A stretch of DNA of 64,000 bases from Macrostomum lignano. Its lineage: Eukaryota. The notes below the pieces were generated by a model. It was not told where the DNA came from, did not search any database, and saw nothing but the letters and a program-made list of their open reading frames with translations. Location of the stretch: positions 146,985-210,984 of the forward strand of contig NIVC01000476.1 in the NCBI GenBank assembly GCA_002269645.1, given 5' to 3'. Each line of letters starts with the position of its first letter. Position 1 is the stretch's first letter. Both the position numbers and the translations under genes were made by a program. Shown here piece after piece: positions 21,924 through 45,450 of the stretch.

Positions 21924-24074
21924 TCACAACCGCACGAGAGTGACGAAGGTGGCCGAAGCGTCAGTGGCCAGCCATCGCTCGCCTCTGTCCAAGTGCAGCG
22001 ACAGCTTTTCACCAGCGCCGAGTCTGCGCACCGCCTCCAGGCGGGCCTGCGACGGCCCCGACTCCGGGTCGCGACCGCGCTGCACCGCGATCCACTCGGT
22101 GTGGCCCACCTGCCACTCCAGGTGAGATGAGTGGCCGTCTGCGAAGGTCACCTGCCGGTGTGGTGGGTCGTTTTGTTGGTTAATTAAAGAATTGATTTAT
22201 TGATTGATTGATTGATTGATTGATCGATTGACTGATTGATTGATTGATATTTATTTATTTATTTATTGGTTGATTGATTAATTGATTTTTGATTGATTGA
22301 TTGATTGATTGATTAATTGATTTTTGATTGATTGATTGATTATTTGATTGATTTATTGATTTATTGATTGATTGATTGATTGATTGATTGATTGATTGAT
22401 ATTTATTTATTTATTTATTGGTTGATTGATTAATTGATTTTTGATTGATTGATTGATTGATTGATTGATTGATTAATTGATTTTTGATTGATTGATTGAT
22501 TTATTGATTGATTTATTGATTTATTGATTGATTGATCGATTGATTGATTGATTGATTGATTGATTGAACGAGTACATGAAGTTTGATTAGTTGACGGTCT
22601 TATTTATTGACTGATAGAAAAGTGATTACATAACTTTTATATCAAAAGGCATAAGCACTGGCTGCTGTCTCACCTGAGCAGTCAGCTGGTACAGTCCGGG
22701 CTGCTGCACAATTAGGTGCGTGCCCAGCCTCTCAAACTGGAAGCCGCAACGACCGCCGTCGTTGGCGCCGTAGACCTCAGCCAGCCTCCAAGGCCCCAGC
22801 GCGTTGTTGTCTGCAAAATAGATTTTGTTTTTTTATTAAACTTTTATCTATCTTGTAAATTATTTTAATTGTAAGTCTCTAAACAACCTACTAACAGTAA
22901 GCGAAAAAGTGAAAGTAGTACTTCAGTAAAATAATGTAGTCTATCATTAGAACACCATATACTAAATTTAGACATATTCGAAAGATATTCTCTGACTAAC
23001 AGACACTGGAGCTCAGGTAGGCTGCGGATATGGCCGAGTTGGAGCTGTTCTCCAAGCACGGAGCCGGACTCAAGCGGGGTTGGCCGCACGGTCCCAATGA
23101 GTTCGAGTCCAGCACAAAGGTTGCGTATTTCTAGAATTGCCAATTATGGGTCCATATTAAACATATCCATATGTATCTATCTATCTATCTATCTATCTAT
23201 CTATCTATCTATCTATCTATCTATCTATCTATCTATCTATCTATCTATCTATCTGTCTATCTATCTATCTATCTATCTATCTATCTATCTATCTATCTAT
23301 CTATCTATCTATCTATCTATCTATCTATCTATCTATCTATCTATCTATCTATCTATCTATCTATCTATCTATCTATCTATCTATCTATCTATCTATCTAT
23401 CTATCTATCTATCTATCTATCTATCTATCTATCTATCTATCTATCTATTTATCTATCTATCTATCTATCTATCTATCTATCTATCTATCTATCTATCTAT
23501 CTATCTATCTATCTATCTATCTATCTATCTATCTATCTATCTATCTATCTATCTATCTATCTATCTATCTATCTATCTATCTATCTATCTATCTATCTAT
23601 CTATCTATCTATCTATCTATCTATCTATCTATCTATCTATCTATCTATCTATCTATCTAATCTATCTATCTATCTATCTATCTATCTATCTATCTATCTA
23701 TCTATCTATCTATCTAATCTATCTATCTATCTATCTATCTATCTATCTATCTATCTATCTATCTATCTATCTATCTATCTATCTATCTATCTATCTATCT
23801 ATCTATCTATCTACCCTAACCCAACCCGACAGCCAGTGCTTACGCAGCGGTGCAGCATGGAGAAGTGCACAAAGCCGCAGATCCCAAGCGAAGCCAGGGA
23901 GCCGAGCAGCAAAACCAGCAGAATCGCCATTCGGCATCGCTGCCCGCACCCGCCGCCGTCGCCGTCACTTGGGCGAACTTTGCGACAGTCCTGTGGAATC
24001 GAGGATTCCATGGAGTATTCGCAGGCCGGATTCTCGTGGCATGTTTGGATCAGGTTCTCGTAGGGCCCGTTCAT
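21924..24074 (-). CDS. TNF-superfamily-like ligand 1 (type II membrane); exons 24074-23844, 23130-23001, 22810-22674, 22151-21924
   Basis: TM AILLVLLLGSLASLGICGFV, then KYATFVLDSNSLGPC...PAPC...NALGPW...HLIVQQPGLYQLTAQ/VTF...VRRLGAGEKLSLHL...ATFVTLVRL-stop. All junctions GT-AG and in phase. Confidence 0.8.
22190..22565. repeat. (GATT)n/(ATTT)n microsatellite in TNF-like 1 intron
   Basis: Seen directly. Confidence 0.95.
23173..23812. repeat. (CTAT)n microsatellite in TNF-like 1 intron
   Basis: Seen directly. Confidence 0.97.
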
Positions 24075-24229
24075 TGTTTTGGCTTTGGTTGTGGAAGATT
24101 CTGTCAGACAAAGATCGTAGGGGCCTCAGGTGAAGACTGCAAGATTAAATAGGAAACGAAAAACGAAAAAAACAGTCGCGTTGCCTTACTGGGAGAATTG
24201 GAAATCCCTGTTAGCCAGGGAACTTCCCT

Positions 24230-24236
24230 TTTTATA
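24230..24236 (-). promoter_or_regulatory. TATA box of TNF-like 1
   Basis: TATAAAA on the minus strand ~160 bp upstream of the ATG, followed by a probable short 5' UTR intron (~24190-24138). Confidence 0.6.
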
Positions 24237-24799
24237 CTGTTTGGCAGATGGGGCTTCTCTTTCTCTGCCCTCTCTCTCTCCCTCTCTCTCCCTACTCTCC
24301 AGTGTACTGCGCAGCTGCGCACAAGCACTCGGCAGTGTACACTGAGTCCTGTGCATAAAAAATGCATTTGCCACATTGTGCGTGCTTTTCTACAACACAA
24401 GGGACTGATAAACTAACAAGGATGTTGAGAAAATAGGACTGAAGCAGCCAGGTGATAAGCATTTGCCAGAGAGCGAACTTCTGAGTCATGTTTGCGAATT
24501 ACCACTCATCGAAAGCACACAACCTTATTGCAGTCATTGAAAGGTTGTTTTATCAGTGCTTTATTATCTTTTAAACTTGACTGGGGTGGTCACAAGGTGT
24601 TTTAAAACAAGGTTATGACTGGAATAAGTGCAGCGTTTGTCTGCGGTTTTTAGAATCCGGAATGACCTGCTATGACTAAATTTAACACAAATGCATACTA
24701 TTTTTGGAAATGCTTCAATTTGGCTACAGGAAGTTAAAGCAGCCAAATGCGACCTCCAGAGGCTGTCCTTAGATTACTGTTTCTACTGCATGTCATGTA

Positions 24800-43600: not shown

Positions 43601-44443
43601 TACTCAGCAATATTGGAAAAGTCGTCATGCACTCTCTGCGCCAGTGAGCAATTTATCTTGGACTATTCTGAAATAAAAGATACGAGAAAAAACTGAGGGG
43701 TTGCTTTAATCCGTCCAACCCTCGCACACCGCTTCCCCCATTCCCACTTCATTCCTCAACTCAAGTCTGCCACAGCGTAGCTGAGTTGCGTCACTCGCAA
43801 ACACTGAGAGACTTTACCTGCACTCTCAAAAGTGGCCACCATCAATGGAATCTTCTGTGATGGCGACTTTTCGATGTTGCTGAGTATAGACCAGCCTATC
43901 AAGAGCATACAAAGTATCAAAGAATGATCTATGTAGACGATATTAAACACGAGCTATTAATAGACGATATACGATAGCAACATATCAATATATTATCAGC
44001 AACTATCCGATATTCGCGAGTTAATTTCTTTCTAAAGTAAACTATTTTCAAGTCCATCGATGCCAGAAACCTTCGCCTTCATTCCGTCAGATGTGGCGCA
44101 ATCATATTTCTAAAAGTGTTGAAAAGAACTAACAGGAAATTCGAAAACTGCCAACTGCTAAAGATAATAACGACTGTTTCTAAAAATAGAATCAGTGGCT
44201 GTCCGCAGGCTGCGCTGTGCAGAGTCTCGCCAACAGACAGCTGCTAAATTTACCCATCGGCGCACAATTGGACTCGCGAACTTGCCTCGAGCCTGGCTAT
44301 TCTTCTGCAGCCTGGCCCGGCACAGACTTCCCAGTTTAGCTCGAGCTGGATTCTATTTTTGTTGCAACAAGATTTGGCACACAATGGAACGTCCCCTCGG
44401 CATCCGTTGGCTGTTGAGGGAAGCAAAGCAGTTCGCCAAACTC

Positions 44444-44450
44444 TATAAAA
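44444..44450 (+). promoter_or_regulatory. TATA box of TNF-like 6
   Basis: TATAAAAG 110 bp upstream of ATG 44554. Confidence 0.65.
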
Positions 44451-44553
44451 GAGGCGACAGCTTCGACTAAAAAAAATTCAACCAAAAATTGCTTGCAAAG
44501 CAGAAGCATACTTGCAAAGACAGCGAAATAAACATCTTCTCTTCAAAGCAACA

Positions 44554-45450
44554 ATGTCCCACCAGGCTCAATCGCTTCTTCTGGAGGCTGGACACGCTGA
44601 GCGTCAGCAGCCGTCGGAGCCGTCCGCGGTGCCCGCCGCCGGTACAAAACCGGCCGCCGAGACGCGCCGTCATCCGCGGCTGCTGCTAGCGGCGGTCGCC
44701 GTGGCCGCCTGCGTCCTGGGCGCTCTGGCCATCGCTGGAGGAGCCACTCAAGCGGCCACAGCTGAAGCCAGCAGCGGTCATGACTCGGCCAATGTGAGTA
44801 TTTTTGTGAGTATTCTTTCTCTTCGAGAAGTCCTTGGCTGCAGAGGCTCCCCCGTCCGCTTTTTCAGTCAATTCTGCTCCGACTGACGCACAAGGGTCTG
44901 CCCCTGTGCTCATCAAACTACAGCGGAACTCTCTGCTGGGGAGCAGGGAAGATCACTAGCAGAGGTGAGCTTGCTGAATATTCGCAGTCAACCGAGTGCA
45001 AGCCCCAACGACATTTACCTTTCGCCTCCGATTCCAGAGGGCACCAACAATGTCTTGGTGGGACCATGGACCTCAGACGGTGGGCCTGCAGCACCCAATT
45101 TTGTCCTGCTAAATGACAGCTCGTTCGGGCTACGGATCCTGAGCCCCGGACTGTACCAGGCAGTGCTCCAGCTGACGGCTCAGAACCACAACGGCAGCTC
45201 TCCGGTCAATCTTGAGTGCCGAGTCAACCTCGACGGCAGAGTCGCCATTGCTGGCAGGGCGATGAACTCCGAGTCGCCGCTAACCTGCTTGGCTGTGGGC
45301 TTCCTGCGCCTGTCGCCAGGAGACCGCCGGGTCAGCGTGTCGCTGAATCGACAGAGGGGCCTGCACGGCCAGAACCAGTTCAGGATCAGGCTGGGGGCAA
45401 ATGGCCTCAACTACATGCAGTTGATGAAAGTAGGAAATAGACAAGTCTGA
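44554..45450 (+). CDS. TNF-superfamily-like ligand 6 (type II membrane); exons 44554-44793, 44868 (or 44844)-44964, 45038-45450
   Basis: TM LLLAAVAVAACVLGALAIAG; ILLRLTHKGLPLC...SGTLC...ITSR; VLVGPW...LRILSPGLYQAVLQL...ECRVNL...PLTC...GFLRLSPGDRRVSV...NYMQLMKVG. Same intron phases as ligand 5. Confidence 0.85.

Follow-up and report, generated by a model that had tools for sequence, protein, structure and literature searches.

A probable tandem array of six TNF-superfamily-type ligand genes in the flatworm Macrostomum lignano

The window analysed here, a 64,000-nucleotide stretch of the Macrostomum lignano genome (assembly GCA_002269645.1, contig NIVC01000476.1, positions 146,985 to 210,984), harbors six related loci within approximately 24 kb (window positions 21924-45450). 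We consider it very probable that these form a tandem array of six paralogous genes encoding TNF-superfamily-type ligands. Locus F is encoded on the minus strand, and loci A, B, C, D and E are encoded on the plus strand. A preliminary description of the same DNA had proposed a tandem cluster of type II TNF-superfamily-like ligand genes. This core claim is supported by the predicted jelly-roll fold and by a profile of the six genes, and all six paralogues are present where they had been placed. The starts on the plus strand, given there as 3.7-4.8 kb apart, are actually 3.3-4.8 kb apart.

Genes A (28427-29179, plus strand) and B (32073-32867, plus strand) are single-exon open reading frames (ORFs) of 250 and 264 amino acids (aa), with a C-terminal TNF homology domain (THD) at approximately residues 89-250 and 104-264, respectively. 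We found no exact protein record for gene A, and a word-index homologue search with it was also empty, as was the same search with the six-gene THD alignment. The splice models of genes C, D, E and F were predicted by reading the DNA. In brief, gene D (41219-41458, 41545-41641 and 41708-42117, plus strand) is predicted to encode 248 aa with a THD at residues 81-248, and gene E (44554-44793, 44868-44964 and 45038-45450, plus strand) 249 aa. Their exon sizes are near-identical (240, 97 and 410 nt in D; 240, 97 and 413 nt in E). The introns of D and E are 66-86 nt long and of phases 0 and 1, and all are of the GT-AG type, with GTGAGC, GTAAGC or GTGAGT as donors and CAG as acceptors. Gene F (24074-23844, 23130-23007, 22810-22674 and 22151-21924, minus strand) has four predicted exons encoding 239 aa. 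An alternative exon 2 donor, GTTAGT, lies 6 bases further on (exon to 23001); it looks better as a donor, keeps the frame and gives a protein of 241 aa. Gene F has the two intron phases of D and E, plus a third intron after the residues LTAQ. Its intron 1 contains (TATC)160 and its intron 3 contains (ATTG)96. The preliminary description counted two single ORFs and four spliced genes. This agrees with our models for A and B and for D, E and F, whereas copy C breaks frame at the homologous splice sites.

Judged from the DNA and its translations, the similarity among the six loci is beyond chance, because four kinds of observation point the same way. Pairwise BLASTP gave E-values of 2e-26 (A-B), 2e-38 (C-D), 8e-25 (D-E) and 6e-25 (C-E) within groups, and of 1e-9 (A-C), 3e-6 (A-D), 7e-5 (F-E) and 3e-4 (F-D) across groups, at identities of 18-45% among the paralogues. 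The GC content at third codon positions (GC3) of the six coding parts is 70-80%, compared with a GC content of 47% for the window, and all six genes have an A at position -3 of the ATG. Intron positions and phases 0 and 1 are common to C, D, E and F. Lastly, scans of the window returned these six loci only; no seventh copy was found by tblastn or by a six-gene hidden Markov model (HMM) run over the six-frame translation and every open frame.

The six-gene profile, searched against the PDB, matched 64 distinct sequences at E<=10. All 64 are TNF-superfamily ligands and none is a C1q protein. An APRIL/BAFF fusion (4.5e-10), EDA (4e-5, the best single-domain match) and the Eiger of Spodoptera (2.6e-4) were followed by CD40L, 4-1BBL, RANKL, BAFF and TNF. 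A HMMER scan of 1.84 billion representative sequences gave 66 matches at E<1e-3, none of them below 1e-30. The named matches include insect THD proteins, a lungfish TNFSF9 and a "TNF_2 domain-containing protein" of M. lignano. Among the 21 matches of at most 460 aa, Pfam TNF was found in 14, BclA_C in six and C1q in two, and many of the best matches are long multi-domain proteins in which a TNF/C1q-like repeat recurs several times.

The TNF motifs quoted in the preliminary description are present only approximately, for example as G[LV][YF]....[AS][QR] and (A/P)G[DE]. A strict PS00251-type pattern for strand C, which we take to be the PROSITE-type TNF signature, is matched by none of the six copies. 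A relaxed pattern, [LIV].[LIVM]...G[LIVMF][YF]...., is found in all six copies, at the position where they align. The THD begins with a cysteine-bracketed loop after strand A, and in HMMER alignments the cysteine of strand F aligns with that of EDA, BAFF and APRIL.

The six genes are also related to the published TNF ligands of free-living flatworms. All nine of the published ligands tested match the six-gene HMM, with E-values from 1e-7 to 2e-17. By BLASTP, F matches a ligand of M. lignano (5e-10), B matches ligands of M. tuba (4e-8 and 5e-8) and A matches one of M. tuba (6e-6). With identities of 21-32%, the ligands of M. lignano and M. tuba are the closest published relatives of the array. 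Two of four published flatworm ligands that we scanned score above the Pfam TNF threshold.

AlphaFold2 models of the THDs of D and A (residues 89-250 in A) are all-beta, with a pLDDT of 74.4 and a pTM of 0.73 for D, and a pLDDT of 75.5 and a pTM of 0.72 for A. Foldseek searches of the PDB placed EDA-A1 first for both models (D, E 1.4e-8, TM-score 0.65/0.76; A, E 1e-7, TM-score 0.69-0.70/0.77-0.79), followed by 4-1BBL, TNF and Eiger. Further matches were BAFF and CD40L for D, and APRIL, RANKL, BAFF and CD40L for A. The best matches of both models have E-values of 1e-8 to 1e-6, and TNF ligands make up 50 of the top 50 matches for A. The preliminary description had left a choice between a TNF and a C1q jelly roll to be checked, and TNF ligands rank above C1q among the matches of the predicted structures. 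The models support a C-terminal domain that is a TNF-type two-sheet jelly roll, predicted to be closest to EDA, BAFF, APRIL and 4-1BBL.

Each of the six proteins has exactly one strong hydrophobic 19-mer, with a mean Kyte-Doolittle value of 2.0-2.9, in agreement with the hydrophobic N-terminal segment described earlier. By Kyte-Doolittle hydropathy the segment is located at residues 38-56 in A, 66-84 in B, 39-57 in D, 43-61 in E, 51-69 in F and 4-22 in C. It is transmembrane-like and located 38-84 residues from the N-terminus in five of the six copies (A, B, D, E and F). The type II topology that had been assigned to all six is favoured, on hydropathy and charge only, in A, B, D and E, where the N-terminal flank is net positive; the charge is ambiguous in F, and in C the segment is signal-peptide-like. 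The six stalks, read by eye, contain neither a collagen Gly-X-Y repeat nor a furin site (R-X-K/R-R). The ectodomains contain N-X-S/T sequons.

Copy C (36389-36481, 36761-36876 and 37420-37841, plus strand, from splice analysis) may be a pseudogene, or else its middle section may have changed or another acceptor may be in use, because the splice sites homologous to those of D and E lose the frame and a stop follows. Its last exon is intact (140 codons, 37420-37841) and its first exon is clear as well. Exon 2 is 116 nt long, versus 97 nt in D and E, owing to a 4-nt gap and a 23-nt insertion compared with D. The stretch encoding NGSLC differs from that of D at third codon positions only, and is now in a frame other than that of the exon start. 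An enumeration of GT-AG sites gave 355 in-frame combinations. None among the models inspected uses all four homologous sites, and in-frame models need a non-homologous acceptor, e.g. 37385 or 37397. Intron 2 of copy C is 543 nt long, versus 66-73 nt in D and E, and contains a tRNA-like element at 36992-37061 on the plus strand (Rfam tRNA, 33.3 bits against a threshold of 29). ARAGORN predicted no tRNA anywhere in the window, this position included, and a blastn search of the window found no second copy of the element. We regard the element as the probable head of a tRNA-derived SINE (short interspersed nuclear element) that lengthened the intron.

A neighbour-joining tree with 200 bootstraps recovered A+B (100%), C+D+E (100%) and C+D (95%). 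The six genes together formed a clade in 0% of the bootstraps, and A+B joined a published M. lignano ligand in 51%; at such divergence the deep nodes of this tree are unreliable. In a survey tree all TNFSF homologues of M. lignano group together (bioRxiv 10.1101/2024.07.27.603686). The cluster had been called lineage-specific in the preliminary description. This is borne out for the A/B and C/D/E sub-clades only, and not for the six genes together. The array clearly contains three old lineages, namely A/B without introns, C/D/E with three exons and F with four, and there is local duplication within A/B and within C/D/E. That intronless A and B lie side by side with intron-bearing C, D, E and F in one array suggests that the ancestor of A and B lost its introns, e.g. 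via a retro-copy, and was then duplicated locally.

Several points weigh against the assignment of these genes to the TNF ligands. None of the six copies reaches the gathering score of Pfam TNF (PF00229, 23 bits). F scores 19.6 bits (E 9e-4), the last exon of C 15.6 bits (E 0.016) and D 12.1 bits, and A, B and E have no match to this family. Searched against the PDB by itself, the A/B profile gave no TNF ligand and only a spurious thioesterase (E 0.007), F gave no TNF ligand and nothing relevant, and the C/D/E profile gave EDA at E 0.009 at best. The sequence link to TNF hinges on the pooling of the paralogues. For A, B and F, independent support comes from the fold prediction, the cross-group BLAST links and the likeness to the published flatworm ligands. 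The models of D and A were both made from one 7-row alignment of the paralogues themselves, their confidence is only about 75, and the Foldseek list of D includes a phage knob domain at rank 15 and C1QL2 at rank 47 (1.4e-6). The ratio of nonsynonymous to synonymous substitutions (NG86 dN/dS) is 0.45-0.76 at a near-saturated dS of 0.9-1.6, which does not demonstrate constraint. A crude pattern for TNFR-like cysteine-rich domains found none in the six-frame translation of the window. Finally, the splice models of C, D, E and F are predictions only, expression of the cluster is an assumption, and trimers, receptor binding and signalling are carried over from what is established for the family.

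Within the assignment to the TNF ligands, a variant that we think unlikely is that the array is an old, maintained cluster rather than a recent lineage-specific burst, with three THD lineages that would be as distant from one another as they are from the ligands of insects and Macrostomum. As flatworms are reported to have a single NGFR-like TNF receptor, many ligands could then act on one receptor, possibly as mixed heterotrimers. If this were true, ligand-side diversification of TNF signalling would become directly testable in a regenerating flatworm.

A less probable alternative, to which we give little credence, is that the proteins have a true TNF-type fold but serve an extracellular purpose other than cytokine signalling through TNFRs, for instance in adhesion, as structural or matrix components, or by binding microbes directly; their extreme divergence would then stem from this change of role. 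The lack of any match below 1e-30 among the 1.84 billion representatives, the identity of at most 32% to flatworm TNF ligands and the position of all six copies below the Pfam threshold are in line with such a role. So are the many long top scan matches with repeated TNF/C1q-like domains and the reported imbalance between a single TNFR per flatworm species and many ligands (PMC7519573). On the other hand, the type II topology with a single C-terminal THD is that of canonical ligands, EDA, BAFF and APRIL have aligned counterparts of both the strand F cysteine and the hydrophobic motif at the C-terminus, and up to 19 Wengen-like receptors have been counted in Platyhelminthes (bioRxiv 10.1101/2024.07.27.603686).

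It is very improbable that the genes encode C1q-domain-containing (C1qDC) proteins, i.e. secreted, lectin-like pattern-recognition proteins, instead of TNF ligands. The two families have a common fold, and C1qDC genes are often tandem-expanded in invertebrates. D has a weak match to Pfam C1q (PF00386; E 0.27, 11.9 bits against a threshold of 23.7), and C1q and BclA_C domains occur among the short scan matches, as does C1QL2 in the Foldseek list of D. However, D is the sole copy with a match to Pfam C1q and none of the six reaches its threshold. Both the profile matches in the PDB and the top 50 fold matches of A consist of TNF ligands throughout, five of the six proteins have an internal signal-anchor and not a cleavable N-terminal signal peptide, the stalks are devoid of Gly-X-Y, and the closest named relatives are TNF ligands. 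We find it least credible of all that the array is largely non-functional and consists of decaying duplicates in a repeat-rich region, as the broken frame of C, the tRNA-like element in its intron, the tandem repeat content of approximately 37% and the dN/dS values might suggest, since the frames of five copies, 239-264 aa long, are complete and free of stops, with canonical GT-AG introns, GC3 stands far apart from the background composition, an A is found at -3 in all starts, and the paralogues have kept their frames at 18-45% identity, which would require long-term constraint.

We therefore return to an array of TNF-superfamily-type ligand genes as the favoured explanation. In each protein a short cytoplasmic tail at the N-terminus would be followed by one membrane-spanning signal-anchor, and a short stalk would connect this anchor to a C-terminal THD of approximately 160 residues. 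By analogy with the family, the THDs would form trimers, either at the cell surface or once shed, and these trimers would bind TNF receptors with cysteine-rich domains. Downstream of the receptors, TRAF, JNK, NF-kB or caspase pathways may be engaged. It is reasonable to guess at a role in immunity, cell death or regeneration. The array would have grown by local duplication in the A/B and C/D/E lineages, and copy C is probably either decaying or spliced in a different way.

Micro- and minisatellites are very abundant in the window, which is eukaryotic. In the region of the array (21924-45450) tandem repeats make up approximately 37% of the sequence, and many of the arrays yield long spurious ORFs. 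The repeats include a 2.3 kb array with a 20-bp unit between F and A (24800-27126), an (AACT)340 array (34626-35987), a 12-bp unit repeated 123 times (30367-31838) and a 33-bp unit repeated 23 times (42834-43602).

Outside the array, a 919-aa ORF of a Ty3/gypsy-type retrotransposon (6182-8941, minus strand) encodes PNMA/gag-like, aspartyl protease, reverse transcriptase and RNase H domains. This ORF showed no integrase domain, and at its C-terminal end it passes into an (SSPLL)n microsatellite. Two exons of an innexin gene are located at 9620-10084 and 10801-11025 on the plus strand (Pfam Innexin, 4.5e-14); the single database match of the innexin exon is a M. lignano innexin with 46% identity. 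An exon encoding a DXD sugar-binding glycosyltransferase domain is found at approximately 15870-16072 on the plus strand (Pfam Gly_transf_sug, 1.4e-10), and a long minisatellite upstream in the same ORF translates as (MSKSTDT)n. On the other side of the array, a 272-aa ORF (51496-52314, plus strand) has no Pfam match and ends in a (QTDR)n repeat. A 223-aa ORF with a DUF3715 (TASOR-type) domain (7e-8) and an adjoining 554-aa ORF are encoded at 59104-61752 on the minus strand. The 554-aa ORF contains proline/serine/valine-rich repeats and has no Pfam match; the two ORFs are probably one gene.

TNF ligand families of free-living flatworms (PMC7519573) and tandem expansions of TNFSF genes in other invertebrates (PMC12843592) have already been published. 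New here are six unusually divergent ligands, in an arrangement that is unsurprising for this family but had not been described from flatworms. If confirmed, these six very divergent TNF-type ligands would join, with their arrangement and exon structures, the short list known from flatworms. The locus would show that local duplication can add copies of such ligand genes, and that copies with and without introns can be adjacent. The genes are candidates for relating several ligands to a receptor repertoire, and leave the mechanistic picture of the family unchanged.

Among known ligands, EDA is the best structural match to the models of D and A (TM-score 0.65-0.79). The array has in common with EDA and with BAFF/APRIL the strand F cysteine, an "(A/P)G(D/E)" turn and a C-terminal "F..h.(K/R)LG", and the identity to this group in structural alignments is 12-18%. 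The likeness to EDA is limited to the THD, as the six stalks are without its collagen repeat and furin site. Orthology to EDA was rejected, as no copy has a collagen-like repeat or a furin site in the part that links its transmembrane segment to the THD. The C1q proteins have the same jelly-roll superfold; however, they are secreted with a signal peptide and often have a collagen stalk, whereas we predict a signal-anchor and find no collagen. In all of our searches C1q came out far behind the TNF ligands. Tandem expansion of C1q-domain proteins is described as frequent in invertebrates (PMC10672478).

Eiger (6i50), the TNF of arthropods, is likewise a type II ligand of an invertebrate, and is matched by both models at approximately 1e-6. 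The insect THD proteins have a "GPW" motif, as do C, D, E and F. The preliminary description stated that fly has one such ligand, Eiger, and a single gene is indeed reported from Drosophila (PMC8024323). In contrast, the array comprises six genes in 24 kb, and their similarity to Eiger is weak.

Within the flatworms, TNF ligand homologues are known only from free-living species (Bertevello et al. 2020, PMC7519573). M. lignano yielded ten ligand sequences and M. tuba four, and Microdalyellia contributed further ones, whereas parasitic flatworms are reported to have lost the ligand and kept the receptor, and each species reportedly has a single NGFR-like TNFR versus many ligands (PMC7519573). 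The genes of the array resemble the ligands of the free-living species in their type II topology, single transmembrane helix and C-terminal THD, and in the presence of several paralogues per species. At the start of the THD they resemble the Macrostomum ligands in a strand A of the form "F/H-x-V-L/I-D" ("FVLD" here), a Cys...Cys loop and "LGP(L/W)". Genomic clustering of the ligands is not described in PMC7519573, from which the word "tandem" is absent, and neither are exon structures nor a mix of intronless and intron-bearing genes.

Multi-copy TNFSF families are known from Crassostrea gigas with 23 genes, from Branchiostoma floridae with at least 24 and from tunicates with up to 14, and new TNFSF genes of tunicates arose mostly via tandem duplication (PMC12843592). 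The array resembles those of oyster, amphioxus and tunicates in being part of a multi-copy ligand family, and differs from them in that it belongs to a flatworm lineage, has far more divergent members and combines intronless with intron-bearing genes.

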